Part shown: piece by piece, positions 2,293-40,322 of the stretch | How positions within the stretch are numbered: position 1 is the first letter of the stretch | Layout of the letters: every line of letters starts with the position of its first letter | Assembly (NCBI GenBank): GCA_950097015.1 | Contig: CATNEN010000038.1 | Span: forward strand, 33,480,001-33,544,000 | Length of the DNA: 64,000 nucleotides | Reading direction: 5' to 3' | Origin: Macrostomum hystrix | Taxonomy: Eukaryota; Animalia; Platyhelminthes | Translations under genes and position numbers: made by a program | Notes under the pieces: model-generated | Databases searched by the model: none | Told to the model about the DNA's origin: nothing | The model's input: the letters and a program-made list of their open reading frames with translations, nothing else

Positions 2293-3231
2293 ATGACTGC
2301 CCATTTTTGCCACGACAGAATCAGTCTCATCCTGCTGCTAATGCTAACGCTCGTAGCTGTGATAGACTCATCTACTGCGAAGGTGATGAACAAGGTGAGG
2401 GCTCATGGACTGACAGTCGAATCATCTAAGTCTCAGCAGCTTCTGACCTATGGTGCGTTGAGCCTCGTGAGCTGCGTGTCGGCCGCTCTGTCCTCCGAGT
2501 CCCAGGAGCCGTCCCGGGCTCCCGTGGCCGAGTTCGACGAGAGCTCCGGCAGCTGCAGGCGACTCGGCCAGCCGATGTTCGCCAACCATTCGCCAGCCGT
2601 GCAGCAGCCTGCTGTGAAGCTGTACGCGAGCTCACGCATCGGAGAGCCCAGACTCGCTCTGTTCTCCATCAAGGCCGGATCGGGAGTCTCTGCGAGGTCG
2701 CTCTACTCGACTCCCGTCGCCGACTGCGGCGCCGGAGGCTTCCTCATGCTGTGGCCGGACTCCGTGCCTCAGGTGGCCAGCTATCGATCGTGCTGGATCG
2801 ATCGACTGACGCAGCTCACCCAGCTGACTGAGCTGATGCCGCGTCGGCAGCTGATCGTCGAGCTGCTGGCCTCATCCGGAGCGAGACTGCTCAGGATCGT
2901 GTTCGACGCGAGCTTCGGCACGAACTGGTTCAGCAAGGCGGCTGTGCTCAGCAGCGAGCCCGACCTCGGCTTGAAGACCGTAACGTACAACTACTTCAGC
3001 ATCGCTGGCTATACAAACCTGAAGGACAACGCAAACAGGGCCTTCTATATCAGCACGCATCACCGAGCCTGCCCCTCTGACAAGGGCTTGCTTGTGATTA
3101 TTGAAAACACTATCGACCCCTGCAGCTGGGCTCGGGTGCCCGCTGCTCCCGGCATCTTCTGCAACCTGGTCCTTGACGAGTGGGGCACCAACAAGCTGGC
3201 AGCTGACTACTTGGTGGTCTTCATCGCCTGA
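2293..3231 (+). CDS. Modular secreted protein family, copy 1 (N-module A + shared core + C-module X)
   Basis: Intronless ORF; ATG 2293 (alternative 2242) precedes hydrophobic signal peptide ISLILLLMLTLVAV; core 2461-2960 near-identical to six other copies; AATAAA at 3245. Confidence 0.85.
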   Translation: MTAHFCHDRISLILLLMLTLVAVIDSSTAKVMNKVRAHGLTVESSKSQQLLTYGALSLVSCVSAALSSESQEPSRAPVAEFDESSGSCRRLGQPMFANHSPAVQQPAVKLYASSRIGEPRLALFSIKAGSGVSARSLYSTPVADCGAGGFLMLWPDSVPQVASYRSCWIDRLTQLTQLTELMPRRQLIVELLASSGARLLRIVFDASFGTNWFSKAAVLSSEPDLGLKTVTYNYFSIAGYTNLKDNANRAFYISTHHRACPSDKGLLVIIENTIDPCSWARVPAAPGIFCNLVLDEWGTNKLAADYLVVFIA

Positions 3232-3585
3232 TGGCAAATTTTCCAATAAAAGCTTTTGATTAACATCTTCGCAATGAATTGGCCAGTCATGTTCGAGAAT
3301 GTTCTGCTAATATGCTAGCAAAGTCGTTTTTATGCCCCTGGCCTTTAAGCTTCAGCCCTTTAAGTATAAAATATTCTGCGTTACGTGTACGCAGAGAGTG
3401 AGTACAAGTGACAGTAAAACCAGAGTTACAAAAAAATGGTGGTTGTCCTTCTGTTTGATTTTTCTCAATGTCGATCGTTTTAATCGTCTTAGGCAAATTT
3501 TTCTTTTTCTTGCCAATTTCAATGATTTCACCCCCGAACGTTACATGCATTAAAAAAAGGCTTCGTTTCTGGAATGCAAGAATTA

Positions 3586-4179
3586 TCATAAAAAACTATG
3601 AAAAAGTCGATGCGGCATCAGCTGGGTGAGTTGCGTCAGTCGATCGATCCAGCACGATCGATAGCTGGCCACCTGAGGCACGGAGTCCGGCCACAGCATG
3701 AGGAAGCCTCCAGCGCCGCAGTCGGCGACGGGAGTCGAGTAGAGCGACCTCGCAGAGACTCCCGATCCGGCCTTGATGGAGAACAGAGCGAGTCTGGGCT
3801 CTCCGATGCGTGAGCTCGCGTACAGCTTCACAGCAGGCTGCTGCACGGCTGGCGAATGGTTGGCGAACATCGGCTGGCCGAGTCGCCTGCAGCTGCCGGA
3901 GCTCTCGTTCAGTTCCACGATCTCGGAGGCGTCAGCTCTCAGAATCGCAGCTGCGAGCAGGCAGGTGGCGAGGTCAGTTGTTTGAGTGACCTGTTGCTCA
4001 GAATGAGACTTCACAATGGCGAGCTCACGATTCAACAGGACTGGCGTCATCTTGCCACATTGTAGGGCTTGAGCTGCCTGTAACTGCAACAGCAGCAACA
4101 GCAGCGCGGTCACCATGGAGACATTCTGGATGTTGGACTGCTTAATATTTAAGCTGATATGTACTACTGCCTCGGACAT
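3586..4179 (-). pseudogene. Modular secreted protein family, copy 2 (unique N-module, core truncated, no C-module)
   Basis: Signal peptide MVTALLLLLLQLQAAQA; core homology 3612-3911 stops after LTQLMP and runs into AT-rich sequence with a stop. Confidence 0.75.
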
Positions 4180-5400
4180 GTAGATTTATCGGAATTTCGG
4201 CATGGGACGCGCCGCAAGTGTTCAGCCCAAGGACTGTAACTACTAAGGTGTTGTTCAGTAGTATCCTAGGTTCAGCTATTCTTCATGAACAGCGCAATCG
4301 GTTGCTGACTTGAATTAAGAGTTAAATTTAAGGAAACAATTAATTACAAAACATTAGCTGTTATGTATTGTTGAGGAAATGGCTATGTAAGGTAGTGGAA
4401 TACCTTACAATCGTGTATTTCCTGTTAAGGTGATAGATTTGAATTGTTTTAAAAAAAATAATTGAGACAGGTTTTAGCGTCTGACGTTTTATTCACAATG
4501 TTAATGCGCAACGCAAGATTCACATTAGTTAGTAAACTGCAGGAAATAATTTGTATACTTAAATAAGTATTAATATAAAATTATTTATTTGTAAATAAAA
4601 CATGCCATATAAAAAACAAACTCTTCTTAGAACAACAATCTTATGCCAGAAACTTTCGTGTTTCGTGATTTCTAGACTATGGAATCTCCAGAAACATTTA
4701 CAGACAAAAGAATGCCATTTATAACAATAGACCACTTTAGTATTTCAAATACATGAATTTTCCATTTTTCAGTATCTTCAAAAATATTCAACTAATCATC
4801 ATCAAAATAAAAAAAACGAGCTGAAATTTTCGCTCTATGCTACGAAACAACTTACAGAAACTGAAAACATTCGGCGCCTTGTAACTAACTCGTATATCGG
4901 GCATAACTGTTGGTTATATTGTTAATTATTGTATATTAAACCAATATCAATTCATCAGAAAAATGCTTATAAAGAGCAATATGTTAGTTGTATATAAATA
5001 GAGAGGCGAGAATCAACATTTAACGACGCGTTTCGCACAACAGTGTGCATCTTCAACTTTATTTTTAACGAATATAGCAAGTAGAGAAGTGAATAAATAT
5101 GAGATTTTTGCGTGTAAATTTAATCAATATTTTAATATTTTCAGTACATATTTGATAGTACTCCTCAGAGTAAACAAAGTAATCAAGAGAGTGAACTTTT
5201 TATGCGTATTACGAGTAACTCTTGTATAACTTTACGCTCGTACATGCATTAACTAGACGATCTATAAATGTAAAATGGTACTGATCGAGTTGACAAATCT
5301 ACCTTTGAATTTTAAATTACGCCAGCTTTCCTGGAAGTTAAGGCAAAACTTTCTCGTGTGCATCTAGTAGAACGCTGTAAAACTTTTTTTCGATCAGCAG

Positions 5401-5745
5401 TCAAGCAGTCTCGTCACAGCAGTACAGCAGGCTATTACTATATTCAACACCAACAATATCCGGAGCCGTCGAGACTCTAGGACCTACGCCAGCAGGTCCT
5501 TCAGCTTGGCCGGATGGATGATTGACTACTGCTGATCGCAAATGCTCCTGATCTTCAATGCGTCGTATCAGTCTCACCTGATCTCTGTGAATGTTATAGA
5601 CACATAATTTTAGTTCAGCAAAGGTAATACAATTCTTATTAAGTGTACCTGTTGTTAGTTGGTAACAAAAACTGCCGTTGAAGTCCACTATCACTTTCGG
5701 AGTTCGAATCAGAATTAGATCTCCTCTCTGTGTCAGCGAATGCAC
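5401..5745 (-). CDS. Probable terminal exon of an uncharacterised gene
   Basis: ttttctcag acceptor immediately before a 114-codon open frame; phase does not directly match the 6764 donor, so an intervening exon (possibly near 6670) is needed. Confidence 0.4.
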   Translation of the reverse strand: MHSLTQRGDLILIRTPKVIVDFNGSFCYQLTTGTLNKNCITFAELKLCVYNIHRDQVRLIRRIEDQEHLRSAVVNHPSGQAEGPAGVGPRVSTAPDIVGVEYSNSLLYCCDETA

Positions 5746-6238
5746 CTGAGAAAATTTATGACTTACGTTATGTCATAATTAGATAAAAAACTGTTCCGTA
5801 TGTATAGTACAATGGTAGAAGTGTGCATATGCGTTCATACACATATATCTAAGAAGTGGACTTAAGTAGGATACACAAAACTACCTAAACCCATCTGATA
5901 TAGATTTAGTAACATACAAGTATTTTACATCCCGTATACATAATCTGTGGATTTAGTCGTCCTTAGAGCTAGACTCAGCTGAAAATAGGGCTTTAAACGC
6001 GGTCACTCGATCGCGTCCCTTTATGTACTTTTGGTGTCGGCCATAGATAAAACGATGACTGCGGTCATTTTTCGATGGCGAAAGGATTGCATAAGGATTA
6101 TTGCGTACCGCTCATAGTTATCCTAAAAAATTGAGCATAGACGAAGTTTCAGTATTTTGTATAAGCACGCTTAGGCCTCGTTTAGGCCATAGAATAATGC
6201 GCTTGTGTAGTACGTCTTAGCCTTGAATAATAGTATAT

Positions 6239-11758: not shown

Positions 11759-13300
11759 ATGCCAGGCGAACAACAAGAACAGCAACTGCAGCAGCAGCAA
11801 GCAAAAGCAGGAGACACAAGCAGTGCAGTTTCTAACAAGACAAATTCCAATGAACAAGCCAAGCCAGCTCAAACAGGTGCTACTCAACAGAAGGAGCAGC
11901 AAAAGCAGCAGCAGCAGCATCATGCTAGCCAATATGGCGGCGGCTACCAGCGCCCCATAGGTCAGGGGGCGCCTTGGCCTCCGCCGCCCTACGGTCCGCA
12001 TCATGGCATGGCGTCAGCGGCAGCGCCAGGCGGATGGAGTGCCGGTTCATTCGACGACGGCTCGAATGTACCAGCCGCCTGGGGAGGCTACGGAAGTGGC
12101 TATCACCATCTGGCACATCAGCAGCAGAGGCGTCACTATCCTGCTGGTGGCGGCGTTGACGGTATCGAGCGTGGCATGGCCGGATTGAAGACTGGCTCGG
12201 CTCCGTCCAAGGATTCAGACTTTCCGGCCCTATCGGGCGGCGTCGCTGGTGGCTTTGGGGGCAACGGTGGGCCGTCGGGCAAATCCAATGCTCCGAAATC
12301 TTGGGCCAAAATAGCAGCAGGTTCTAATTCTTCGCAGACGGCGCAGCCGGAAACTCAACAGCAGCAAGATGAGCAACAGCAGCAGCAGCAGCCGCAACCA
12401 ATCCAGCAGCATCAGCAGGGTCAGCAGTTTCAGCACAATAAGCCGCGCGCCCTGGGTCGCGGATTCGCTATGCCGCCACCTCAGATGCCCTATCATCATC
12501 AGCAGCATCACCCGGCCATGTTTGGTCCTCCTCACCACATGCCGCCGCCGCCGATGCCGCTGCAGGCGCCGCCGATGCCGTCTGGCGATCTAGACGAACG
12601 AATTCGCAGCCTAATGCTGAGCGTCAATCCGCCCAGCCTAGAAGTGCCGGAAAATTCCGAGTTCTATGTTATTAAGAGCTACAGCGAAGATGACATTCAT
12701 CGGGCTATTAAATACTCGATCTGGTGCAGCACGCCGCACGGCAATTCTCGGCTTAACAAAGGCTATCAGAGAGCTACACCTCTAGGCGGCAAAGTCTACT
12801 TGCTGTTCTCTGTTAACGGCTCCGGGCACTTCTGCGGCGTCGCACAAATGACTTCGGAGGTTGATAATAGCAAGAAGGCGACAGTTTGGTGCCAGGACAA
12901 ATGGCAGGGCCAATTTAGCATCGCCTGGTTGCTAGTTAAAGATGTGCCAAATAGTCAGTTGCGCCACATTAGGATTGTCAACAACGAGAATAAGCCAGTG
13001 ACCAATTCGCGAGATTGCACTCAGGTAAGAAGGTGGTCAGTTGGCATTAACAAAAATGGATTTCTGTATGTCACTCACTCTACTGACAGTAGATAGTACA
13101 GTATATATGGCTCCTAATCACATTATATTACATTAACTACATTGTCAATTTTGCTCACAAATTTTCCACAGGTGCCAATTGAACAGGGCCGACAGGTGTT
13201 AGCGATCCTTCTGGCCTATCGCAACAGCACGAGCATCTTCGACGACTTCAATCACTACGATAGGCGCGAACAGGAAGGCAGCAGCGGCCCGCCAATGTAG
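11759..13300 (+). CDS. YTHDF: YTH domain family m6A reader (YTHDF-like); exons 11759-13024 and 13172-13300
   Basis: FYVIKSYSEDDIHRAIKYSIWCST...WCQDKW...NKPVTNSRDCTQ|VPIEQGRQVL..TSIFDDF; aromatic cage Trps intact; GT-AG intron phase 0; P/Q/G-rich N-terminus with GMAGLK and KSWAKIA motifs. Confidence 0.95.
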
Positions 13301-14324: not shown

Positions 14325-16860
14325 CATCCTCTTCAGCCTTCTACCACCCCAGTTCTTCAGCCTTCTACCTGCAGTTCTTCAGCCTTCTACCTGCAGTTCT
14401 TCAGCCTTCTACCAATCCAGTTCTTCAGCCTTCTACCAATTCAGTTCTTCAGCCTTCTACCAATTCAGTTCTTCAGCCTTCTACCTGCAGTTCTTCAGCC
14501 TTCTACCTGCAGTTCTTCAGCCTTCTACCTGCAGTTCTTCAGTCTTCTACCAACCCAATTCTTCAGCCTTCTACCCCCAGTTCTTCAGCCTTCTACCTGC
14601 AGTTCTTCAGCCTTCTACCTGCAGTTCTTCAGCCTTCTACCTGCAGTTCTTCAGCCTTCTACCTGCAGTTCGTCAGCCTTCTACCAATCCAGTTCTTCAG
14701 CCTTCTACCAATCCAGTTCTTCAGCCTTCTACCAATTCAGTTCTTCAGCCTTCTACCTGCAGTTCTTCAGCCTTCTACCTGCAGTTCTTCAGCCTTCTAC
14801 CTGCAGTTCTTCAGTCTTCTACCAATCCAGTTCTTCAGCCTTCTACCTGCTGTTCTTCAGCCTACTACCTGCAGTTCTTCAGCCTTCTACCTGCAGTTCT
14901 TCAGCCTTCTACCTGCAGTTCTTCAGCCTTCTACCTGCAGTTCTTCAGCCTTCTACCAATCCAGTTCTTCAGCCTTCTACCAATCCAGTTCTTCAGCCTT
15001 CTACCAATTCAGTTCTTCAGCCTTCTACCAATTCAGTTCTTCAGCCTTCTACCTGCAGTTCTTCAGCCTTCTACCTGCAGTTCTTCAGCCTTCTACCAAC
15101 CCAATTCTTCAGCCTTCTACCCCCAGTTCTTCAGCCTTCTACCTGCAGTTCTTCAGCCTTCTACCTGCAGTTCTTCAGCCTTCTACCTGCAGTTCTTCAG
15201 CCTTCTACCTGCAGTTCGTCAGCCTTCTACCAATCCAGTTCTTCAGCCTTCTACCAATCCAGTTCTTCAGCCTTCTACCAATTCAGTTCTTCAGCCTTCT
15301 ACCTGCAGTTCTTCAGCCTTCTACCTGCAGTTCTTCAGCCTTCTACCTGCAGTTCTTCAGTCTTCTACCAATCCAGTTCTTCAGCCTTCTACCTGCTGTT
15401 CTTCAGCCTACTACCTGCAGTTCTTCAGCCTTCTACCTGCAGTTCTTCAGCCTTCTACCTGCAGTTCTTCAGCCTTCTACCTGCAGTTCGTCAGCCTTCT
15501 ACCAATCCAGTTCTTCAGCCTTCTACCAATCCAGTTCTTCAGCCTTCTACCAATTCAGTTCTTCAGCCTTCTACCTGCAGTTCTTCAGCCTTCTACCTGC
15601 AGTTCTTCAGCCTTCTACCTGCAGTTCTTCAGTCTTCTACCAATCCAGTTCTTCAGCCTTCTACCTGCAGTTCTTCAGCCTTCTGCCTGCAGTTCTTCAG
15701 CCTTCTACCTGCAGTTCTTCAGCCTTCTACCAATCCAGTTCTTCAGCCTTCTACCTGCAGTTCTTCAGCCTTCTACCTGCAGTTCTTCAGCCTTCTACCA
15801 ATCCAGTTCTTCAGCCTTCTACCAATCCAGTTCTTCAGCCTTCTACCAATCCAGTTCTTCAGCCTTCTACCTGCAGTTCTTCAGCCTTCTACCAATCCAG
15901 TTCTTCAGCCTTCTACCAATCCAGTTCTTCAGCCTTCTACCACCAGTTCTTCAGCCTTCTACCTGCAGTTCTTCTGCCTTCTACCAATCCAGTTCTTCAG
16001 CCTTCTACCAATCCAGTTCTTCAGCCTTCTACCACCAGTTCTTCAGCCTTCTACCAATCCAGTTCTTCAGCCTTCTACCAATCCAGTTCTTCAGCCTTCT
16101 ACCTGCAGTTCTTCAGCCTTCTACCAATCCAGTTCTTCAGCCTTCTACCTGCAGTTCTTCTGCCTTCTACCAATCCAGTTCTTCAGCCTTCTACCAATCC
16201 AGTTCTTCAGCCTTCTACCACCAGTTCTTCAGCCTTCTACCAATCCAGTTCTTCAGCCTTCTACCACTAGTTCTTCAGCCTTCTACCTGCAGTTCTTCAG
16301 CCTTCTACCAATCCAGTTCTTCAGCCTTCTACCACCAGTTCTTCAGCCTTCTACCTGCAGTTCTTCAGCCTTCTACCAATCCAGTTCTTCAGCCTTCTAC
16401 CACCCCAGTTCTTCAGCGTTCTACCCCCAGTTCTTCAGCATTCTACCCCCATTTCTTCAGCCTTCTACCCCCCAGTTCTTCAGCATTCTACCCCCATTTC
16501 TTCAGCCTTCTACCCCCCATTTCTTCAGCCTTCTACCCCCCAGTTCTTCAGCCTTCTACCCCCCAGTTCTTCAGCCTTCTACCCCCCAGTTCTTCAGCCT
16601 TCTACCCCCCAGTTCTTCAGCCTTCTACCCCCCAGTTCTTCAGCATTCTACCCCCATTTCTTCAGCCTTCTACCCCCCAGTTCTTCAGCATTCTACCCCC
16701 ATTTCTTCAGCCTTCTACCCCCCATTTCTTCAGCCTTCTACCTCCCAGTTCTTCAGCCTTCTACCCCCAAGTTCTTCAGCCTTTTACCCCCCAGTTCTTC
16801 AGCCTTCTACCCCCCAGTTCTTCAGCCTTCTACCCCCCAGTTCTTCAGCCTTCTACTCCA
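14325..16860. repeat. 22-24-bp satellite (CAGTTCTTCAGCCTTCTACC-TG/AATC/CCC)n with 546-bp higher-order duplication
   Basis: Visible tandem array; diagnostic variants recur at 14551/15097 and 14861/15407. Confidence 0.97.
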
Positions 16861-17539: not shown

Positions 17540-19220
17540 CCTATCAGCTTCCCAGTTCCCATAGACAGTTAATCAGTTTCACAGATCCCCATAGACAGTT
17601 AATCAGCTTCCCAGATCCTTATATACAGTTAATCATCTTCACAGATCCCCATAGACAGTTAATCCGCTTCCCAGATCCTTATAGACAGTTAATCCGCTTC
17701 CCAGATCCTTATAGACAGTTAATCCGCTTCCCAGATCCTTATATACAGTTAATCATCTTCACAGATCCCCATAGACAGTTAATCCGCTTCCCAGATCCTT
17801 ATAGACAGTTAATCAGCTTCCCAGATCCTTATAGACAGTTAATCAGCTTCCCAGATCCTTATATACAATTAATCAGCTTCCCAGATCCCCATAGACAGTT
17901 AATCACCTTCCCAGATCCCCATAGACAGTCAGTCACCTTCCCAGATCCCATAGACAGTTAATCAGTTTCACAGATCCCCATAGACAGTTAATCACCTTCC
18001 CAGATCCCCATAGACAGTTAATCAGCTTCCCAGATCCCCATAGACAGTTAATCACCTTCCCAGATCCCCATAGACAGTCAGTCACCTTCCCAGATCCCCA
18101 TAGACAGTTAATCAGCTTCCCAGATCCCCATAGACAGTTAATCAGCTTCCCAAATCCTTATATACAGTTAATCATCTTCCCAGATTCTTATAGACAGTTA
18201 ATCAGCTTCCCAGATCCTTATAGACAGTTAATCCGCTTCCCAGATCCATATAGACAGTTAATCCGCTTCCCAGATCCTTTGAAGACTGTTAATCAGCTTC
18301 CCAGATCCTTTTAGACAGTTAATCCGCTTCCCAGATCCTTATAGACAGTTAATCAGCTTCCCAGATCCCCATAGACAGTTAATCAGCTTCCCAGATCCTT
18401 ATAGACAGTTAATCAGCTTCCCAGATCCTTATAGACAGTTAATCCGCTTCCCAGATCCTTATATACAGTTAATAATCTTCACAGATCCCCATAGACAGTT
18501 AATCCGCTTCCCAGATCCTTATATACAGTTAATCATCTTCACAGATCCCCATAGACAGTTAATCCGCTTCCCAGATCCTTATAGACAGTTAATCAGCTTC
18601 CCAGATCCTTATAGACAGTTAATCAGCTTCCCAGATCCTTATAGACAGTTAATCAGCTTCCCAGATCCTTATAGACAGTTAATCAGCTTCCCAGATCCTT
18701 ATAGACACTAGACAGTTAATCCGCTTCCCAGATCCTTATAGACAGTTAATCAGCTTCCCAGATCCTTATAGACAGTTAATCCGCTTCCCAGATCCTTATA
18801 TACAGTTAATAATCTTCACAGATCCCCATAGACAGTTAATCCGCTTCCCAGATCCTTATATACAGTTAATCATCTTCACAGATCCCCATAGACAGTTAAT
18901 CCGCTTCCCAGATCCTTATAGACAGTTAATCAGCTTCCCAGATCCTTATAGACAGTTAATCAGCTTCCCAGATCCTTATAGACAGTTAATCAGCTTCCCA
19001 GATCCTTATAGACAGTTAATCAGCTTCCCAGATCCTTATAGACAGTTAATCCGCTTACCAGATCCTTATAGACAGTTAATCAGCTTCCCAGATCCTTATA
19101 GACAGTTAATCAGCTTCCCAGATCCCCATAGACAGTTAATCAGCTTCCCAGATCCTTATAGACAGTTAATCAGCTTCCCAGATCCCCATTAAGAGTCAGT
19201 CAACTTTACAGATCCCCATA
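17540..19220. repeat. 30-bp minisatellite (ATAGACAGTTAATCAGCTTCCCAGATCCTT)n, ~55 copies
   Basis: Visible tandem array ending just before the TRAPPC12 acceptor at 19263. Confidence 0.97.
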
Positions 19221-19263
19221 GGCATAGGCGATAAACAAAGTCGCATCGCATCTTATCCCGCAG

Positions 19264-24544: not shown

Positions 24545-25828
24545 GACTTACTTGACTTAGCGGCAGGGAGCCTCCATGACGGACGCAGCGAGGAGGCGGC
24601 CGGTGCCGCCCATATCGCTAACCCCTGGCAGCCGGACGGCCTCCAGCGAGGCGGTGCCGCTCAGGGTGGTCCGTCGGTCGGTTCCGCCGCGTGATCTCCC
24701 TCGCCATAGGCTGGGAAGAAATCAGCTCGGCCGGTATCGCGGAGGAAGTGGGCGAGCTGTGCAATGCTCTCGGGCGAGCAGGCTTCGACTAGGGTCGGCA
24801 CCGGCCCGAGATGTTTTAGCCTAGCCCGGGTGAAGGCCGGGCAGTGGCAGATGAAATGCTCGGCGTTTTCACGTCCGGAGCAGCAGAAGGGACACGTTTC
24901 CTCAGACACGTGGCCTTGGAGGTAGCGGTGTCTGGTGAAGCAGCCATGTCCCGAGAGGGCCATGGTGACTGCTCTCAGGTCTCTGCGATTTAGCCTAAGC
25001 AAGGCTTTACGCAGGTTACTAGAGGGGGTTGGCACCGCAGCCCTGGACTGGCGACAGTTCAGGGTGCTAGACCACCTCCTTCGGTGTTGGGTCTCCATCC
25101 AGCGGTTGATGTTGGAGTTTACCACAGAAATAGGGATCGGGGCCTCCAGGCCCGGGCCCATCAGGGAGCTGGCTGCTCCAGCCTTTGCAAGCTGGTCCGC
25201 CATCTCATTCCCTGTGAGCCCGGCGTGCCCAGGGATCCACATCAGCTCCACCTTGTTAGACTGTGCCAATCCGTTTAACTGGGTGTGGCAGTCTAAGGTG
25301 GTCCTGGAACGAGAGGTGCAGCGGCTGAGGGCCTTGAGAGCTGCTTGACTGTCGGAGTGAAAGAAAATCCTTCGTCCAGCCAGCTCCCTCTGGCGCAGTT
25401 CAGCCACACAGAGACTAATGGCGAGCATTTCGTTTTGGAAAACGCTTGAGCTCTTGCCACAGTGTTGGGAGTGGGTCCAGAGGACGTCACCACCCGAGGC
25501 GACGCACACTCCGAATCCCGAATTACCGTTCATCAGAGAGCCGTCAGTGTAGCAGTGGACCGCTGGGTCATCCCAGCAGTCCTTAACCTCATTGCGAGGA
25601 AGGATGCTGACCTTGTACCTGTGGCTCCGGAGTAAAGTGGCCAGGGCCCCATCCGAGAGGATGTTGAGCCCTCCACACTCGCCCAGAGTTTTCAGGCATA
25701 GGTCAGAGTGAGGCAGAAGGGAGCGCTTCGGGAAGGCTCGCAGCTTCTGGAAGGAGACCCCCGCATCTAGAAGATGCCGGGTGGACTTTGCCGCTTCCCC
25801 CTTGATATAAATGTCAATGGGTGTAGCG
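24545..25828 (-). mobile_element. 5'-truncated non-LTR retrotransposon with RNase H and C-terminal Cys/His finger
   Basis: [41 protein letters not shown]; [12 protein letters not shown]; short AAGT(C) tail; 12-bp TSD CTTGGCTCCTGT at 24533-24544 and 25829-25840. Confidence 0.93.
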
Positions 25829-26109: not shown

Positions 26110-27039
26110 ATGCTTCGAAATTTCACTAAAGCACTATTAGCAACAATCACTATCACGATTTTACCGCTTGAAACAGCAACGCAAGGGGTGTACAAGACTC
26201 CTCGACTTCACGGAATGAAAGTAACACCAAGCCAAGCCAGGCTGCTCCCATCAGCTGGTCCAGTTAAATTTAGCCTCATCAGCTGCGTGTCGGCCGCTCT
26301 GTCGTCCGAGTCCCAGGAGCCGTCCCGGGCTCCCGTGGCCGAGTTCGACGAGAGCTCCGGCAGCTGCAGGCGACTCGGCCAGCCGATGTTCGCCAACCAT
26401 TCGCCAGCTGTGCAGCAGCCTGCTGTGAAGCTGTACGCGAGCTCACGCATCGGAGAGCCCAGACTCGCTCTGTTCTCCATCAAGGCCGGATCAGGAGTCT
26501 CTGCGAGGTCGCTCTACTCGACTCCCGTCGCCGACTGCGGCGCCGGAGGCTTCCTCATGCTGTGGCCGGACTCCGTGCCTCAGGTGGCCAGCTATCGATC
26601 GTGCTGGATCGATCGACTGACGCAGCTCACCCAGCTTACTGAGCTGATGCCGCGTCGGCAGCTGATCGTCGAGCTGCTGGCCTCATCCGGAGCGAGACTG
26701 CTCAGGATCGTGTTCGACGCGAGCTTCGGCACGAACTGGTTCAGCAAGGCGGCTGTGCTCAGCAGCGAGCCTGAACTAAACCTGGGATCAAGGCCTTATT
26801 TGTACTTTAACATTCCTGGATTTTATGCACCTGAAAGTTCGATCGACCGAAGCTTTTATATCCTGACAGGTGAGGGCGGCTGTGGCTCAGACGCTGGCCT
26901 GTTGGCTGTGGTAAACGTCGTTGACGTGTGCAGCTGGGCAAGAGTGGCAAAGCTGCCTGGTATTGTCTACTCGCCGAGCTTCGCCAATTTTGAAAACAGC
27001 AGAATGCTGGCGGAGTACTTTGTTGTGCTGGCAGCCTGA
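26110..27039 (+). CDS. Modular secreted protein family, copy 3 (N-module B + core + C-module Y)
   Basis: ATG-initiated 309 aa ORF with signal peptide; core 26272-26771. Confidence 0.87.
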   Translation: MLRNFTKALLATITITILPLETATQGVYKTPRLHGMKVTPSQARLLPSAGPVKFSLISCVSAALSSESQEPSRAPVAEFDESSGSCRRLGQPMFANHSPAVQQPAVKLYASSRIGEPRLALFSIKAGSGVSARSLYSTPVADCGAGGFLMLWPDSVPQVASYRSCWIDRLTQLTQLTELMPRRQLIVELLASSGARLLRIVFDASFGTNWFSKAAVLSSEPELNLGSRPYLYFNIPGFYAPESSIDRSFYILTGEGGCGSDAGLLAVVNVVDVCSWARVAKLPGIVYSPSFANFENSRMLAEYFVVLAA

Positions 27040-27977: not shown

Positions 27978-27989
27978 GTACGCCTGCTA

Positions 27990-29809: not shown

Positions 29810-29845
29810 AACTATTCTCAGTAGACTTATGTATTTACATTGTAG

Positions 29846-29919
29846 CAGACCAACAGCGAAAACATTTTTTTCATGATTTAAGAAACCCTTCGGCAAACGA
29901 ATTGCTCTTCGCTGTTGCT

Positions 29920-29951
<32 letters not shown>

Positions 29952-30375
29952 GCCATCGAGCCCTCGAGCGGTATTCGCACATCGATGCCACCAGTGCGGC
30001 AGCGGCTTCCATAGTCAGTCGGAGCTGAACGCTCACTTCGCGGCCAGGCACGCTGGAGAGACGCTGCCGCGAGAGCTGACCGACGCCAAGTCGTGGAACT
30101 CAGCAGCCCTGTCCGACTCTCGCCTGGCCTCCGTGGCGGTTCGACTGCCCAGCGACGCCTCTGTGCTGGTCGGCTTCCGCTGTCCGGACTGCGGCCACCT
30201 GGCCAAGTGGCCGACGGAGCTGCAGAAGCACGCCATGGTGCACTCGGCTGCCCGGCCCCACGTCTGCGCGGTGTGCGGCCGAGCCTACAAATGGAAGTGG
30301 GACCTAGCCAGACACTTCCGACGCTGCCACGGCTGCCTTGTGAACCCCTACCAGAAGAGGCAGCGCAATTTGTAG
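29846..30375 (+). CDS. Terminal exon of a C2H2 zinc-finger protein (3 fingers, polyQ)
   Basis: CHQC..HFAARH, CPDC..HAMVH, linker SAARPH, CAVC..HFRRCH; tgtag acceptor at 29845; possible micro first exon ATGAGGC|GTAAG at 28789-28795. Confidence 0.82.
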
Positions 30376-30810: not shown

Positions 30811-31746
30811 TCACACCACATAAACTATCAAGAAGGCTGCGTGTTTTCTGTCGCTAGCGAATGTGGCAAAGTTCGGCTTGAATATGATTCCAGGAATACG
30901 GGCCACTCTTGCCCAGCTGCACACGTCAACGACGTTTACCACAGCCAACAGGCCAGCGTCTGAGCCACAGCCGCCCTCACTTGTCAGGATATAAAAGCTT
31001 CGGTCGATCGAACTACCAGGAGCATAAAACCCAGGAATGTTAAAGTACAAATAAGGCCTTGATCCCAGGTTTAGTTGGGGCTCGCTGCTGAGCACAGCCG
31101 CCTTGCTGAACCAGTTCGTGCCGAAGCTCGCGTCGAACACGATCCTGAGCAGTCTCGCTCCGGATGAGGCCAGCAGCTCGACGATCAGCTGCCGACGCGG
31201 CATCAGCTCAGTCAGCTCGATGAGCTGCGTCAGTCGATCGATCCAGCACGATCGATAGCTGGCCACCTGAGGCACGGAGTCTGGCCACAGCATGAGGAAG
31301 CCTCCGGCGCCGCAGTCGGCGACGGGAGTCGAGTAGAGCGACCTCGCAGAGACTCCCGATCCGGCCTTGATGGAGAACAGAGCGAGTCTGGGCTCTCCGA
31401 TGCGTGAGCTCGCGTACAGCTTCACAGCAGGCTGCTGCACGGCTGGCGAATGGTTGGCGAACATCGGCTGGCCGAGTCGCCTGCAGCTGCCGGAGCTCTC
31501 GTCGAACTCGGCCACGGGAGCCCGGGACGGCTCCTGGGACTCGGAGGACAGAGCGGCCGACACGCAGCTCACGAGGCTCAACGCACCATAGGTCAGAAGC
31601 TGCTGAGACTTAGATGATTCGACTGTCAGTCCATGAGCCCTCACCTGGTTCATCACCTTCGCAGTAGATGAGTCTATCACAGCTACGAGCGTTAGCATTA
31701 GCAGCAGGATGAGACTGATTCTGTCGTGGCAAAAATGGGCAGTCAT
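30811..31746 (-). CDS. Modular secreted protein family, copy 4 (N-module A + core + C-module Y with a distinct tail)
   Basis: N-terminus and upstream DNA ~99% identical to copy 1; C-module matches copy 3 up to CSWARVA. Confidence 0.87.
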   Translation of the reverse strand: MTAHFCHDRISLILLLMLTLVAVIDSSTAKVMNQVRAHGLTVESSKSQQLLTYGALSLVSCVSAALSSESQEPSRAPVAEFDESSGSCRRLGQPMFANHSPAVQQPAVKLYASSRIGEPRLALFSIKAGSGVSARSLYSTPVADCGAGGFLMLWPDSVPQVASYRSCWIDRLTQLIELTELMPRRQLIVELLASSGARLLRIVFDASFGTNWFSKAAVLSSEPQLNLGSRPYLYFNIPGFYAPGSSIDRSFYILTSEGGCGSDAGLLAVVNVVDVCSWARVARIPGIIFKPNFATFASDRKHAAFLIVYVV

Positions 31747-32099
31747 TTCTTGCTTTCGGTAGAGAAGAATTTCTAGATCCGATATTACGACATGCATTTT
31801 TATTGGCAACAGTTGAAAAATCTAAAAGCTTCTAATTGAAAGTCTCTTTACCAACTAATACACAGTACTTGAAGCTAATTTCCTCTCTTGCACGCCGTCT
31901 TGATGGACTTGAAGTATGCATTTAAACATGTCGACTCAATTCAGTGAGAAATGTTTTCTGCTATCAATATTTCTCAAGCGCTGTCCATCGCGTTGCATCA
32001 GCTCTCATTGAATCATGTTATTAAAATGTTTGTCACCTTGTTTCCTATACGAATCTATAGTTGTATCCGCTGAAGTTTTTTTCAGATATCACGCGCATT

Positions 32100-32427
32100 G
32101 GTGGTGCTATAGTTGGCAGTGGGTGGTGCTAGTTGGCAGTGGGTGATGCTAGTTGGCAGTGGGTGGTGCTAGTTGGCAGTGGGTGATGCTAGTTGGCAGT
32201 GGGTGGTGCTAGTTGGCAGTGGGTGGTGCTAGTTGGCAGTGGGTGGTGCTAGTTGGCAGTGGGTGATGCTAGTTGGCAGTGGGTGGTGCTAGTTGGCAGT
32301 GGGTGGTGCTAGTTGGCAGTGGGTGGTGCTAGTTGGCAGTGGGTGATGCTAGTTGGCAGTGGGTGGTGCTAGTTGGCAGTGGGTGGTGCTAGTTGGCAGT
32401 GGGTGGTGCTAGTTGGCAGTGGGTGGT
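32100..32427. repeat. Inverted copy of the 20-bp minisatellite, ~16 units
   Basis: (GGGTGGTGCTAGTTGGCAGT)n is the reverse complement of the 915-1940 unit. Confidence 0.97.
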
Positions 32428-32597
32428 TCTTCCAGATTCGTTAAACGCGTGAGTAACAGTAGACAGAAGACAAAGTTAGTAGACGAACTTTATTTCAACC
32501 TTAATTTCAGCTAACCTATTGGTGCTAGGAGCTTTCAGCTCAAGCAGAGCTTCCAGTCAAAACAATACAGCGACTTCTCGAAGCGCAAAGCGATTCC

Positions 32598-33518
32598 CTA
32601 AGCAACAAACACAACAAAATATTCGGCCAGACGTCTATTTGAGACAAAGTAGGAGATAGCTTGATTGTAGATAATGGCAGGCAGCGCGGGGGCCTTGGCC
32701 CAGTTGCAGGGATCAACTCTGTCCACTACAGCAAGCAGCCCGAGGTCGGTTTCGCAGGCGCCCTCGCCTGTGATGATGTAGAAATTCCGGACAATTGAGG
32801 AACCTGGTTTATAATACCCTGAAATGCTAAAGTACACGTAAGATCTTGAGGCCAAGTTGAGGTTGGGCTCGCTGCTGAGCACAGCCGCCTTGCTGAACCA
32901 GTTCGTGCCGAAGCTCGCGTCGAACACGATCCTGAGCAGTCTCGCTCCGGATGAGGCCAGCAGCTCGACGATCAGCTGCCGACGCGGCATCAGCTCAGTC
33001 AGCTGGGTGAGCTGCGTCAGTCGATCGATCCAGCACGATCGATAGCTGGCCACCTGAGGCACGGAGTCCGGCCACAGCATGAGGAAGCCTCCGGCGCCGC
33101 AGTCGGCGACGGGAGTCGAGTAGAGCGACCTCGCAGAGACTCCTGATCCGGCCTTGATGGAGAACAGAGCGAGTCTGGGCTCTCCGATGCGTGAGCTCGC
33201 GTACAGCTTCACAGCAGGCTGCTGCACAGCTGGCGAATGGTTGGCGAACATCGGCTGGCCGAGTCGCCTGCAGCTGCCGGAGCTCTCGTTGAACTCGGCC
33301 ACGGGAGCCCGGGACGGCTCCTGGGACTCGGAGGACAGAGCGGCATTCGCGCAGCTGATGGAACTACTAATTCGTGTAAGCAGTAAGTGCGTGGCCGGTG
33401 ACTTTAGAGTCACATGCTGAGATAGAATGCGATTCACGCAGTCAAATCGAGTCTTAGCGCTGATTTGAGCAATCGAGCTGAGAAGCACTGCGTAGACTAG
33501 CGACTTTACCGGCCTCAT
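32598..33518 (-). CDS. Modular secreted protein family, copy 5 (N-module C + core + C-module Z)
   Basis: ATG-initiated 306 aa ORF with signal peptide; core 32867-33343. Confidence 0.87.
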   Translation of the reverse strand: MRPVKSLVYAVLLSSIAQISAKTRFDCVNRILSQHVTLKSPATHLLLTRISSSISCANAALSSESQEPSRAPVAEFNESSGSCRRLGQPMFANHSPAVQQPAVKLYASSRIGEPRLALFSIKAGSGVSARSLYSTPVADCGAGGFLMLWPDSVPQVASYRSCWIDRLTQLTQLTELMPRRQLIVELLASSGARLLRIVFDASFGTNWFSKAAVLSSEPNLNLASRSYVYFSISGYYKPGSSIVRNFYIITGEGACETDLGLLAVVDRVDPCNWAKAPALPAIIYNQAISYFVSNRRLAEYFVVFVA

Positions 33519-34773: not shown

Positions 34774-35715
34774 ATGCTGCAGATTGAATCGGCCGGAGTA
34801 CTTTTAGCAACCATCTTCCTGATGCTACAAGGTCTTCCGAATGCAGCTACTACTGAATGTGTGTACAGGACGCCTCGAATTTACGGGTTGAAAATAGCAT
34901 CCACACAAGCCAGGCTGCTCCCATCAGCTGGTCCAGCTAAATTGAGCCTCATCAGCTGCGTGTCGGCCGCTCTGTCGTCCGAGTCCCAGGAGCCGTCCCG
35001 GGCTCCCGTGGCCGAGTTCGACGAGAGCTCCGGCAGCTGCAGGCGACTCGGCCAGCCGATGTTCACCAACCATTCGCCAGCTGTGCAGCAGCCTGCTGTG
35101 AAGCTGTACGCGAGCTCACGCATCGGAGAGCCCAGACTCGCTCTGTTCTCCATCAAGGCCGGATCGGGAGTCTCTGCGAGGTCGCTCTACTCGACTCCCG
35201 TCGCCGACTGTGGCGCCGGAGGCTTCCTCATGCTGTGGCCGGACTCCGTGCCTCAGGTGGCCAGCTATCGATCGTGCTGGATCGATCGACTGACGCAGCT
35301 CATCGAGCTGACTGAGCTGATGCCGCGTCGGCAGCTGATCGTCGAGCTGCTGGCCTCATCCGGAGCGAGACTGCTCAGGATCGTGTTCGACGCGAGCTTC
35401 GGCACGAACTGGTTCAGCAAGGCGGCTGTGCTCAGCAGCGAGCCCGACCTCGGCTTGAAGAACGTGACGTACAACTACTTCAGCATCGCTGGCTACACAA
35501 AACTGAACAACAACGCGAACAGATCCTTCTATATCAGCACGCATCACCAAGCCTGCTCCTCTGACAAGGGCTTGCTTGTGATTATTGAAAACACCATCGA
35601 CCCCTGCAGCTGGGCTCGGGTGCCCGCTGCTCCCGGCATCTTCTGCAACCTGGTCCTTGGCGAGTGGAGCACCAACAATCTGGCAGCTGACTACTTGGTG
35701 GTCTTCATCGCCTAA
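34774..35715 (+). CDS. Modular secreted protein family, copy 6 (N-module B' + core + C-module X)
   Basis: ATG 34774, signal peptide; QARLLPSAGP shared with copy 3; C-module ~94% DNA-identical to copy 1. Confidence 0.87.
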   Translation: MLQIESAGVLLATIFLMLQGLPNAATTECVYRTPRIYGLKIASTQARLLPSAGPAKLSLISCVSAALSSESQEPSRAPVAEFDESSGSCRRLGQPMFTNHSPAVQQPAVKLYASSRIGEPRLALFSIKAGSGVSARSLYSTPVADCGAGGFLMLWPDSVPQVASYRSCWIDRLTQLIELTELMPRRQLIVELLASSGARLLRIVFDASFGTNWFSKAAVLSSEPDLGLKNVTYNYFSIAGYTKLNNNANRSFYISTHHQACSSDKGLLVIIENTIDPCSWARVPAAPGIFCNLVLGEWSTNNLAADYLVVFIA

Positions 35716-36391
35716 CCCTCTCTTGCTGTCTTTATTGATTTTTTTACATTTTTCGCTGGAATTTTTGGGATTGAGATATAAAATTTCGTTTTAACATTTG
35801 TCATCTTGCATAAAGGATTGAGATGTCAAAACGTCAGCGTCCCGCTCCTTATTTCTTCGTTTTTGTGTTTAGTCTTTCTCATTTGCCTATTGAAAATTGA
35901 CAGATTCTAGTCAAGAAAGTTCAAATCGCAGGAATAGGTAAGCATCATGAGTTGCATGCATGTGTCAATTTCAGGTTCAAGTGAATTGTTGGTATTGTCT
36001 GTCTCTGAGCATCGAGTGATATTTCTCTTCGAAAAATATTTTGATTGAAGCCTGTCAACCCAAGGGATTCTGAAGAATAGGCAAGCTGAGAACACTAAAA
36101 GTATCTATTGAGTTGGCTTGCTTATTGTAAGGCGTAGATGAATGACGCGATTGTACAATATTTAGTATAGAGCATGCAAAGTTAATGTTGTATAAGTGGT
36201 CCGTTACATTTTAAAAGATGGGAAGAAATTCTCGCCCATACAATGGTAGATTATATAGTATGTTATGGCCATTATTTAACGCCGAAACATACTATATAAT
36301 TGCATTGTATATATAGCATACCAGTAGCCAATTATAATTATTTATTTGAGTTAAGCAATGACAACTTTTGTCATTGCTTAACTCTGCCTAC

Positions 36392-37819
36392 TACACCTTT
36401 TTCCATTCTATTTTGGCAATCGTGCAATCAAAGTCAAAATCTTTTCATTCAATTCAGACAGTTTATGGTAGTTCTTGGCCGGAAGTGCATTCAATTCCGA
36501 CAAATGTGCTTTCAAAAGCGACAATTTTCAAACAAAGCAAACAAGCTACCACGAGAAACCGACACTTTGCAATCAATTCAAACAATTCGCAATCAATTCC
36601 GACAGTTGGCTATGAATTGGCTTTTTCTGTCCTCCTATCGATGGCTCATACTGCGAAATTTCCAATCAATTCCGACAAATTTCAATCTATTTAGACAAGC
36701 TACTTTTTACTTTACTAGGGCCAGGGCTAAATTCCATAGACACATTATGGAGAGAAACTGTTCAGCTGAAGTTGTAAACCGCCCGAAAGTTTACGTCGAT
36801 GAATTTGGGTTCGACTGCTGGACATGGAGGTCGCAGGGCCGTGCTCAACAGGGTCAGAGAGCATATCGGCGTGTTGCAGGATCGAAGGGCCCACGACTGA
36901 CGGTCTGTTGTGCAGTTTTACCTGGTATCGGAGTACTGCACTTCCAGACGTACCCAACCGGCATGACAAAAAAAGATTCGCGGAATTTCTTAACATCTTG
37001 GTCGGCAACATACAAGAAGCATTCAACCAGCCAGCCTTTGTCATTTATGACAACGTAAGTAGTCATAACGACGGAGAAGATCAGGAACTTCCTTGAGTTA
37101 TCGAGATGCGACGCCTGCCTCCCTATAGCCCATTCCTGACACCCGTCGAGAATGCGATATCGGCTTGGAAGGCTGCGATTAAAGTCGAGCTAGCCACAAA
37201 CATCGACGCCTTTCTGAACCCCGACCAGCAAGCTCTTGCTGGACGAACCAAAGCAGCATATCGGCGTGATATGCTTGAGGGAGTAACGAATAGTACTGTA
37301 AACGTCGTCACCGGAGCCAACTGCACGGCTTGGTACAACCAGTCTGACTTATGTACCGCGCTGCATTGCGGAAGTGCCGATTGATGGCTAAAATCTGACT
37401 GCTGAATCTTTATGAACCTCATGAACTCTGCTGACTGTTTCAGTTTTAGTTGTCCTGTTGCATTTTGAAGTATACTGTAAATGTACAGTACATGTAGTAT
37501 GTACTCCAATGGCTTGTCTAAATAGATTAAAATTTGTCGGAATTGATTGGAAATTTCGCAGTATGAGCCATAGATAGGAGGACAGAAAAAGCCAATTCAT
37601 AGCCAACTGTCGGAATTGATTGCGAATTGTTTGAATTGATTGCAAAGTGTCGGTTTCTCGTGGTAGCTTGTTTGCTTTGTTTGAAAATTGTCGCTTTTGA
37701 AAGCACATTTGTCGGAATTGAATGCACTTCCGGCCAAGAACTACCATAAACTGTCTGAATTGATGAAAAGATTTTGACTTTGATTGCACGATTGCCAAAA
37801 TAGAATGGAAAAAGGTGTA
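36392..37819 (+). mobile_element. Defective IS630/Tc1-superfamily DNA transposon with ~307-bp TIRs
   Basis: TA...TA flanks; TIRs 36394-36700 and 37512-37817; DDE motifs VYVDEFGF, IYDNVSSH, LPPYSPFLTPVE broken by a frameshift and a stop. Confidence 0.9.
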
Positions 37820-37859
37820 GATCTGTCATTACTTAATGCTACTAAAATTAGGCAACCAG

Positions 37860-38470
37860 TCGACCATAGACAAACTTTCAGGCTTTGCTGCAGTGGGCCA
37901 TAGACAAAGATTTAGGCCTTGACGCTGAACGAATATCTGCGCTTTTTCTACTATACACTTAAGAAGACTAATGGTAGTTTGTATGCCCCCTCTAGCTTGA
38001 TATGCTGGAGGGCTGGGATGCAAAGGTACTTCAGCATGATCCTAAAGCGTCCGCTTAATATCGTGTCTGGAGAAGACTTTGTTAGCTCAAATCGGATGTT
38101 GCGTGTTAAGATACGCGAATTTCATAATTCAGGTGGAACAACTAAGCAGTTTCTACCGATCGAGGAAGCAGATCTGGAAAAAGTCAAGGCATACTTTGAT
38201 AGAACCACAGCCGGACGCTTACAGGACGAGGTGGTATTCACCATTCTCTATAGTCTTGGGGAAAGAGGACAAGAACACCTTAAGCATGTGTCCATGTGTC
38301 CATGACAGTCAGCAGGGCTCTTAAGCGGAAGGGCGAAGCGGAGACTGCGATCTCTACACTAACGAGTGTGTCAGCTGATCCTACACATGGACAGATGGAT
38401 GATATGTTCGATAGGACACCGAGCATGTTTGCCGGTTGCTCATTCCAGCACTGCACTATTACGACGTAAC
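37860..38470 (+). mobile_element. Deleted Crypton-type (DUF3504/ZMYM-KCTD1-like tyrosine recombinase) fragment
   Basis: LNEYLRFFYYTLKKTNGSLYAPSSL..RAGMQRYF..LQDEVVFTILYSLGERGQE; C-terminal MFAGCSFQHCTI motif follows a deletion. Confidence 0.75.
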
Positions 38471-39399
38471 TTTACGAAGTGATGCTCTAATTGTCATCCT
38501 TAGGATTGCAATAAGGCTAGACACTTTGTTTTATTGTTTATTATCATGTTTTCAAGTTGTCTCCCTATAAAGTTATAACAAATATAACACAGCATATGAA
38601 AAAATTGTCTATGGTCAAAAAGTTTTCGTTCAGCGCTAAGGAATGACAAAATAGTGCGTGTCATTATTGAACGGATAAGTTTTATTTGATATGTTAATTG
38701 GTACATATTATGTAAGCGATCAACGATCAGTAAACACACACGAAAAAACACAAAAATCTCGGTACCAGTAAGTCCGGTTATCATTCCGCCAGGTACTGAG
38801 AAGTCGTTTCTCCTTTCCTTAACTCACTGTCCAAATAGCTGCTTCGTAGGACATAGTCTATGATAGTCTGGAAAAATTAAACAGACATGAAACCTTTAGC
38901 TCTTACTACAGACATAAATGTATATAGCTCGTATAATATATATAATTTTTCTAAAAATTACATTTTATGTGGCTTTTGTGGGGGTCTGACATCACACCCC
39001 CGGAAAAGCACAGAAAATACCATAGACAAAACGATAAGAAAAGAAGAAAAAAGTTATCGGTAAAAAGGACTGTATCGATGCACGGACAGAAAAACACGCC
39101 ATCAAGGAAACTATCAGACGCATCACCTAAAACGAGCTATCATCAATGCCTCATGTTCGAGCCAACCTGAACATTAAAGTAATGAATTTTTAGCCATGCC
39201 AGTTGACGGAACTGAAGATCTCTCAGAGACCATTGTCGCACAATTATCTGCACTTTCTCTTAAAAACTTCAATCCATTTTTGACATTTTTATGAAGGTAG
39301 CAACACACAAATCTATAATAGTGAATTTGGCAGGAAATACCAGGCAAAAAAAATCCACAAAAATAAATTATTAACCATAAAATTTTGTCGCACAGACGC

Positions 39400-40322
39400 A
39401 TGCGAGCGGCCATCTATCAAGCGGCAGCACTGGTTCTGCTGTCTGTCCTTGGTCGAACAGAAGTAGCCACAAGTAGTGTTTTAATGAAGTTCGAAAACCT
39501 TTAAAAGTAGCGGCACCCAGTGAAGTGGAGTTTCTGAGGGACAGCTGGGACAGCCTCATCACTTGTGTATCGGCCGCTCTGTCGTCCGAGTCCCAGGAAC
39601 CGTCTCTGGCTCCCGTGGCCGAGTTCGACGAGAGCTCCGGCAGCTGCAGGCGACTCGGCCAGCCGATGTTCGCCAACCATTCGCCAGCCGTGCAGCAGCC
39701 TGCTGTGAAGCTGTACGCGAGATCACGCATCGGAGAGCCCAGACTCGCTCTGTTCTCCATCAAGGCCGGATCGGGAGTCTCTGCGAGGTCGCTCTACTCG
39801 ACTCCCGTCGCCGACTGTGGCGCCGGAGGCTTCCTCATGCTGTGGCCGGACTCCGTGCCTCAGGTGGCCAGCTATCGATCGTGCTGGATCGATCGACTGA
39901 CGCAGCTCACCCAGCTGACTGAGCTGATGCCGCGTCGGCAGCTGATCGTCGAGCTGCTGGCCTCATCCGGAGCGAGACTGCTCAGGATCGTGTTCGACGC
40001 GAGCTTCGGCACGAACTGGTTCAGCTCAAAAGCTATTGTCTCAAGTGATCCAGATCTGGGACTGTTCTCTCTATTTTATAATGAGTTTTCTATCGCTGGA
40101 GTCTTTGATCCTGAGAATAAAATAGACAGAGTGTTTTACGTCAGCAAGCAGCACAACTCCTGCCCCTATGACACGGGCTTGCAAGTTGTAACTGATTCTG
40201 TCAGCGAAATTGGCGGCTGGGCTCAGGTGCCTGCTGCTCCTGTCATACTTTACAATCTTCGGCTGCAGTCTTCGGTGAGCCATCGGATGCTGGCGGAGCA
40301 CTATGTCATTTATATTGCATAG
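39400..40322 (+). pseudogene. Modular secreted protein family, copy 7 (N-module D + core + C-module W), frameshifted near 39475
   Basis: ATG 39400 gives signal peptide MRAAIYQAAALVLLSVLG in a different frame from the CFNEVRKPLKV..core frame, which begins after TAG 39474-39476. Confidence 0.75.

Follow-up and report, generated by a model that had tools for sequence, protein, structure and literature searches.

How can neighbouring genes remain almost identical in their centre when both of their ends are highly divergent, and how can the same ends come to stand in different combinations? This question is raised by a cluster of genes for small secreted proteins in the flatworm Macrostomum hystrix SR1, located in a stretch of 64,000 nucleotides (contig C38, positions 33,480,001-33,544,000) that was analysed as a whole and is hereafter called the window. 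These genes are very probably old tandem paralogues, in which interlocus gene conversion homogenises the best-conserved block among the clustered copies, and occasional crossovers or one-sided conversion tracts re-pair the ends. The assembly comprises 220,453,370 bp in 42 contigs, the longest of 35,345,953 bp, and was obtained from an inbred line (F ~0.998) with PacBio reads assembled by canu and polished with Arrow and pilon (PMC10468722). Names with the prefix C and a number denote contigs, those with the prefix L denote extracted stretches with local coordinates, and all other coordinates are those of the window.

A previous reading of the window from its letters alone (the sequence-only reading) had placed seven open reading frames (ORFs) here, and the ORF listing agreed with it in position and strand for all of them. 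Six of the seven are uninterrupted over 306-313 aa, and these genes are therefore regarded as intronless. The same reading had proposed that further copies be sought in the genome; BLASTN searches of the window and 40 kb of its left flank gave one more gene (c0) and a fragment (f0) directly to the left, and at least 57 matches to the family were found genome-wide. The core-bearing copies, each complete one consisting of an N-module, the common core and a C-module, are listed below from left to right.

f0: L034:3636-4009, + strand; fragment with an N-module like that of c2 and half a core (BLASTN)
c0: L034:5405-6328, - strand; complete eighth gene, pairing C-X (BLASTN)
c1: 2293-3231, + strand; intact, 312 aa, pairing A-X, with A at 2293-2457, core at 2458-2966 and X at 2967-3231
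c2: 3586-4179, - strand; shortened, 197 aa, N-module E and core positions ~75-380 with a 9-bp deletion, without C-module
c3: 26110-27039, + strand; intact, 309 aa, pairing B-Y, core at 26269-26777
c4: 30811-31746, - strand; intact, 311 aa, pairing A-Y, core at 31078-31581
c5: 32598-33518, - strand; intact, 306 aa, pairing C-Z, core at 32853-33360
c6: 34774-35715, + strand; intact, 313 aa, pairing B'-X, core at 34942-35450
c7 signal-peptide-like ORF (N-module D): 39400-39504, + strand; frame different from that of the core ORF
c7: 39525-40322, + strand; core at 39552-40025 and C-module W, without an in-frame start codon in the assembly

The orientations from f0 to c7 read + - + - + - - + +, indicating that inversions have occurred. 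Copy c2 is the tail-to-tail neighbour of c1. The spacer of the tail-to-tail pair f0/c0 holds a (GAGTA)n microsatellite of ~69 units (L034:4589-4930).

Core identity and age contrast

The core measured 470-509 bp and any two copies of it differed at 5-19 bases, that is, they were 96.0-99.0% identical (BLASTN among the copies). Over 21 pairs compared in windows of 30 nt, mean identity was 0.43-0.54 in the N-part, 0.97-1.00 in the core and 0.51-0.71 in the C-part, and the change at each core edge was complete within one or two such windows. Nei-Gojobori estimates on a codon alignment gave a synonymous divergence (dS) of 0.008-0.06 among the cluster cores, and of ~0.1 for c7, because its 3' edge lies earlier. 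The near-identity of the ~500-bp centre, synonymous sites included, was thus confirmed, and so was the strong divergence reported for the ends: N- and C-modules of different classes were saturated in dS, with a non-synonymous divergence (dN) of 0.5-1.3. Modules of the same class differed by a dS of 0-0.09.

Against the dispersed paralogues L008 (contig C11) and L009 (contig C39), the dS of the cluster cores was 0.62-0.98. The tract is therefore far younger than the coding sequence that flanks it and than the split from the other paralogues. Homogenisation is restricted to linked copies, as cores of ≥96% identity were confined to the nine copies within ~47 kb, and three copies on contigs C3, C11 and C39 were at 77-82%. 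GC content at third codon positions (GC3) was 0.81-0.83 in the cluster cores versus 0.69-0.73 in those of L008 and L009, which fits GC-biased conversion of the homogenised core. A dispersed core-like copy on contig C3 (L010, C3:3796621-3797218) shows 82% nucleotide identity and carries in-frame stops, as a pseudogene outside the homogenisation.

When L008 and L009, which do not exchange, were compared with each other, the core block was 64-80% identical at the nucleotide level, the N-part 30-42% and the C-part 51-64%. The core is thus the best-conserved stretch of the family anyway, and the sole one in which old paralogues keep enough similarity to pair. That it coincides with the block conserved between two non-exchanging genes is what passive gene conversion limited by similarity predicts. 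Together, the dS contrast, the proximity of the copies, the conservation profile and GC3 form the pattern left by interlocus gene conversion when both similarity and distance limit it.

Module pairings, breakpoints and flanks

Module classes were assigned with BLASTN and a window map. N-module A is common to c1 and c4, including 680 bp of upstream DNA, and C to c5 and c0. Among the C-modules, X is present in c1, c6 and c0, Y in c3 and c4, Z in c5 and W in c7. Genes with a near-identical N-module carry synonymously saturated C-modules: c1 and c4 have a dS of 0 in A, yet X in one and Y in the other; c0 and c5 have a dS of 0.02 in C, yet X and Z, respectively. The reverse is also true, as c0, c1 and c6 have X in common, yet their N-modules are C, A and B'. 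A near-identical module at one end of genes whose other end is saturated means that sequence has been exchanged, with junctions in the core or at its edge.

The sequence-only reading had held that duplication and divergence alone cannot produce such genes and that separate trees of N-module, core and C-module should conflict. Both expectations were supported, since the maximum-likelihood trees of the three segments disagreed, and approximately unbiased (AU) tests rejected all clades of the N-tree on the C data and, conversely, all clades of the C-tree on the N data (p 1.4e-5 to 3e-74). Distances suggest that the C-classes are older than the split from L008 and L009, but monophyly of the cluster was not rejected on the C data (AU p 0.41), and such a greater age is therefore not claimed. 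Additionally, all four gametes were observed at core sites 129, 260 and 352, which indicates repeated exchange within the core.

Breakpoints were mapped from the copies that were ≥93% identical per 45-nt window, together with counts of differences. Instead of the two breakpoints previously assumed, six or more positions were found, some of them inside N- and C-modules, and such numerous and varied breakpoints are expected for tracts of differing lengths. The reciprocal pairings described before proved less strictly modular than proposed. B (c3) and B' (c6) are not the same module, as they differ at 56 of the first 90 nt and only the final 60-90 nt of their N-modules are shared. Nor are the Y modules of c3 and c4 the same throughout, being 97% identical over 180 nt and then ~53% over the last 90 nt (42/90 differ). 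The final ~90 nt of c4 form a tail without any second match in the genome. The N-module of c2 is not the orphan it was taken for, f0 being a 98% copy of it. Neither are the core edges uniform: c7 leaves the core 33 nt before the other copies at the 3' side, and c2 and f0 have their 5' edge ~75 nt later. For copy 7, read before as D-W, module W was found as described, and the signal-peptide ORF proved to be out of frame with the core ORF. The frame change (39400-39530) lies near a short T run, and represents either a pseudogene or real frameshift, or an indel left in the long-read assembly after polishing.

The features flanking the A genes are as follows.

20-bp minisatellite: 915-1939, no strand; 51 copies (TRF), forming the distal part of the A-gene 5' flank
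c1 upstream flank: 1611-2292, + strand; common with c4, in a 1353-bp tract of 98.5% identity
c4 upstream flank: 31747-32430, - strand; common with c1, with 16 copies of the 20-bp minisatellite at 32100-32427

The A tract was defined by BLASTN (1611-2961 vs 32430-31078) and extends from the 3' core edge across the N-module and ~350 bp of otherwise unique upstream DNA to the minisatellite, which is strongly strand-skewed, lies ~350 bp upstream of both A genes and forms the outer edge of the common tract. With the core at one end and the minisatellite at the other, both ends of the tract are anchored in repeated DNA. Downstream, c1 and c4 each have a 3' flank that is single-copy in the genome. 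For C, homology stops 21 bp ahead of the start codon; for B and Y, as for X and C, it stops at or inside the ORF, with unique flanks beyond. The genes are therefore old residents and not recent segmental duplicates. A simple segmental duplication was accordingly ruled out for most modules.

Copies c4 (-) and c6 (+) are inverted neighbours, and an inversion between them would interconvert A-Y/B'-X and A-X/B'-Y. The core variants 352T and 354G are common to these two copies alone. The geometry fits a single c4-c6 inversion as the origin of the reciprocal chimeras, but the parental arrangement that it predicts is not mirrored in the flanks around c1 and c3, and no crossover can be placed from the small number of SNPs in the core.

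The pattern is also present elsewhere in the family. High-identity tracts covering only part of a gene were found in further clusters; in L039 (C7:8883501-8889500), positions 2014-2448 and 4520-4954 are 97% identical over 435 bp, and the genes are otherwise diverged.

Competing explanations

According to the conversion of old tandem paralogues, ectopic gene conversion in the germline would repeatedly overwrite the stretch that is still similar enough to pair, namely the core, and the N- and C-modules would persist as ancient, mutually unalignable lineages. Modules of the same class would likewise be homogenised among themselves, and conversion is probably what keeps them alike. Crossovers with a junction in the core would re-pair the ends, by unequal exchange between direct copies and by inversion between inverted ones; conversion tracts acting on one side, with one anchor in the core and the other in a flanking repeat, could do so equally. 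The outcome would be the pairings A-X, A-Y, B-Y, B'-X, C-X and C-Z. The data show the mosaic, the age contrast, the incongruence and the restriction to the cluster directly, whereas the molecular route (conversion or crossover), its timing and any benefit of the new pairings are inferred.

Several observations weigh against this interpretation. Under non-allelic homologous recombination (NAHR) the flank is expected to travel with its module, and this was seen for A (680 bp upstream and the minisatellite) and not for X, C, B or Y, so that A is the only module to carry its flank along. In none of the three X genes does homology extend beyond the stop codon, a pattern that recent crossovers cannot account for. 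The 5' core edge lies at nearly one position in five N-classes, and the 3' edge coincides exactly in three C-classes, which is tidier than most conversion mosaics; the coincidence is attributed to the conservation profile of the family, and selection on a fixed module boundary may be an alternative. Read-level data came from the public runs X1-X4, examined as Logan contigs and unitigs. The Logan contigs break at the core, and no record bridges N to C. In favour of the interpretation, local junctions were confirmed in contigs for Y/core, core/A and Z/core. The word depths of X1, which serve as consistency only and not as a measure of copy number, were 749 for one collapsed core unitig, 77-87 for unique flanks (unique parts 77-110) and 144-149 for the A, C and Y segments. 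A last limit is that the comparison covers one species and one line.

A different and unlikely explanation is that the cluster is a selected generator of diversity, in which the core is a recombination hub and frequent germline exchange, or even somatic exchange or a reversible c4/c6 inversion, re-pairs the ends of a recognition protein. The sharp core edges that coincide across classes would suit it, and so would the chimeric pairings, the mixed orientations, the exclusive sharing of 352T/354G by the inverted neighbours c4 and c6, the shortened copies c2 and f0 as possible donors, and the weak fold likeness to lectin-type domains described below. In some pairs of the same class dN exceeds dS, and the X modules of c0 and c6 differ at 10 non-synonymous and 0 synonymous positions; this 10:0 count alone is not significant (~p 0.06), and positive selection on the modules was discarded as the counts are too small. 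No recombinase was found with Pfam among the ORFs of the window besides an RNase H/reverse-transcriptase remnant and a DDE_3 transposase remnant, so that the nearby enzyme ORFs are transposon remnants only, and the core edges consist of ordinary codons, with no signal-like motif. Breakpoints also fall within modules, the core is an intrinsically conserved block, and the similar mosaic in further family clusters argues for a general process. The proposal of the sequence-only reading that the core is a hub thus survives in one respect: the dS values and the AU tests indicate that the core mediates exchange. A purpose-built generator of repertoire is not what the scattered breakpoints, the conserved nature of the core and the lack of a recombinase or signal suggest. 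It also seems rather improbable that the core is kept identical as a hub and that N x C pairings vary between individuals, or even between cells, through core exchange including the c4/c6 inversion; if true, the secreted lectin-like proteins of the flatworm would form a combinatorial repertoire in the manner of the Sp185/333 or FREP systems.

An artefact of assembly or polishing, where the assembler switched copies in the repeated core or polishing made the cores alike, is very improbable. It might be suspected from the noisy PacBio reads and their treatment with canu, Arrow and pilon (PMC10468722), as polishing can blur near-identical repeats; from the frame problem of c7, which could be a leftover indel error; and from the unbridged core of the Logan contigs. 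The 0.5-kb repeat is, however, far shorter than PacBio reads, and the assembled contig measures 35 Mb. In the raw-read unitigs of X1, 243 nt of the core form one path whose depth is ~nine times that of single-copy sequence; the reads themselves thus carry the identity, and the inbreeding of the line (F ~0.998) makes mixing of haplotypes unlikely. Moreover, the modules count as A twice, C twice, B, B' and D once each against X three times, Y twice, Z and W once each, and the X1 depths of the A, C and Y segments relative to unique parts agree with this count; no one-to-one pairing of classes is possible, and the shuffling therefore survives any mis-join.

The remaining alternative, that no exchange took place and the core is under very strong purifying selection or the ends were hypermutated after a recent burst of duplication, gains some appeal from the core being where the family is best conserved (it codes for the PAN domain plus the beginning half of the C-terminal one), but it is scarcely credible, being already contradicted by the dS values and the AU tests: synonymous sites are also identical in the core (0.008-0.06 vs 0.6-1.0 to dispersed paralogues), the same module is near-identical (dS 0-0.09) where the other end is saturated, so that the ends are not unstable, and ends of different classes keep the invariant residues of the family, pointing to old divergence under constraint.

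Protein family, transcription and comparison with known systems

At the N-terminus, the proteins of the intact copies carry a hydrophobic stretch, as is typical of signal peptides, and no membrane-like segment follows it. Pfam gave no match, including Fibrinogen_C, in the proteins that these genes encode in the window. In an AlphaFold model, residues 22-116 adopt a PAN/apple fold, matching the leech anti-platelet protein (Z 6.3, root-mean-square deviation 2.8 over 80 residues), and also plasminogen and further PAN modules. PF00024 matched 7 of 91 relatives and none of the window's own proteins; the PAN/apple assignment is predicted at the fold level only. The C-terminal domain of ~190 aa was modelled confidently (predicted local distance difference test, pLDDT, 94.6). 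Its best 13 fold matches were all fibrinogen-related domains (FReD), intelectins or TLDc domains (Z 4.2-5.4), and the next one was at Z 2.8. Foldseek gave E-values of 0.3 or worse, and a profile search against PDB sequences gave no solved structure. A name for this domain was rejected, since Pfam, the PDB sequence profile and Foldseek were all non-significant and the only matches were weak (Z ~5).

Searches in ESM Atlas led to molluscan and cnidarian clusters with PAN + Fibrinogen_C/COLFI. With a profile built from 17 paralogues, 907 cluster representatives were retrieved; Macrostomum lignano supplied the best of these, Mytilus, Nucella, Acanthaster and Ptychodera were also represented, and PF00024 was present in some. 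The nearest database proteins (M. lignano) were ~29% identical. Exact look-up of nine proteins in a collection of 15 billion returned none, and the word-based search for homologues returned none either.

At the protein level, the core corresponds to the PAN domain plus the first half of the C-terminal domain, whose second half, with a conserved cysteine pair, comes from the C-module. As the boundary between core and C-module is in the middle of a domain, the swap junction lies inside that domain. By analogy with fibrinogen-type lectins, the variable C-half may carry the binding specificity; the family being widespread and PAN + fibrinogen/TLDc-like, this half is a reasonable place to seek it.

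Runs X2-X4 comprise 40-46 Mb of contigs that cover only genic parts, one of them terminated by an adapter, and look like RNA-Seq from the M. hystrix study. Contigs of X2 cover c5 from ~230 nt downstream of the stop codon to the N-module, and X3 and X4 hold the W gene (c7 type) at a depth >100. This suggests that the cluster genes are transcribed, the type of the runs itself being a guess. The W-gene contig of X3 and X4 departs from the reference ~36 nt inside the core (window 31545 / 33332, core position ~37, after CCCAG) and continues for 56-85 nt of AT-rich sequence with no match in the window, its 114-kb surroundings or the assembly. The join at an acceptor-like CCCAG/G may reflect a spliced 5' exon from unassembled DNA or a contig chimera.

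Other features were observed in the window. Between c6 and c7 a DDE_3 (Tc1/mariner-type) transposase remnant is located at 36300-37820, flanked by inverted repeats of 310 bp with 99% identity (36391-36700 and 37512-37820). The ORF at 24661-25533 (-), with RNase H and reverse-transcriptase-like matches, is a retroelement remnant just upstream of c3. Unrelated genes lie within the cluster: one for a YTH-domain protein with long Q-rich stretches (11759-13096, +) and a small C2H2 zinc-finger ORF (29902-30375, +), interleaved with it. Minisatellite arrays were detected at 14330-16860, 17543-19185 and 42167-43285 (periods of 22, 30 and 28 bp; 111, 55 and 40 copies, respectively), the first of which produces spurious ORFs of ~900 aa in two frames.

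The cluster is a very legible natural case of how conversion and unequal recombination can give a tandem family a constant scaffold on which the ends are interchangeable. Because the junctions cut a folded domain mid-way, it shows which domain halves tolerate swapping. It also draws attention to a large and unstudied family of secreted PAN + fibrinogen/TLDc-like proteins in flatworms, molluscs, echinoderms and hemichordates. The genome-wide rate of ectopic conversion in M. hystrix may be the more interesting question.

Programmed cassette and inversion systems include the trypanosome VSG genes, pilE/pilS of Neisseria and plasmid shufflons. The M. hystrix cluster resembles them in its conserved segments that serve as homology for swaps, its shortened copies and its inverted repeats able to flip a segment. 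Those systems possess either a site-specific recombinase or an expression site plus silent donors. The M. hystrix cluster instead contains six complete genes, every one of which brings its own start and its own signal peptide, and the window yielded no recombinase.

In the sea urchin Sp185/333 (SpTransformer) family, repeats at segment edges are proposed to promote duplication or conversion (PMC3091723), and the 20-bp minisatellite that bounds the A segment is comparable to them. Both families are tight clusters of small secreted-protein genes in mixed orientation, made of mosaics of shared blocks (PMC3091723). They differ in that sequence and fold are unrelated, and in that Sp185/333 genes and their flanks are similar throughout, whereas the M. 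hystrix copies share only the core and most flanks are unique. Sp185/333 has a documented immune role (PMC3091723). The FREPs of the snail Biomphalaria are reported to be diversified by point mutation and gene conversion (PMC3313920). They are similar to the M. hystrix proteins in being secreted, in an N-terminal binding module followed by a C-terminal fibrinogen-like architecture, and in forming a multigene family with diversity attributed partly to conversion; unlike them, the M. hystrix proteins lack an IgSF domain and a Pfam Fibrinogen_C match, the likeness being a fold match of Z ~5 only.

Concerted evolution of parts of genes and hybrid genes formed by NAHR are familiar from globin, opsin, RHD/RHCE and KIR genes. 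As in such families with interlocus conversion or NAHR, the tracts of identity are bounded by diverged sequence, the paralogues are far younger within the tract, only linked copies are involved, segment trees conflict, and the chimeras have their junction in the common tract. Unlike the globin-type cases, the M. hystrix cluster has one short tract in nine copies with at least five N-classes and at least four C-classes attached, its tract splits a protein domain mid-way, and it belongs to a flatworm family without a described function. The process that these comparisons point to is not a new mechanism but a known one, gene conversion together with unequal recombination, of which this cluster is a very clear case.

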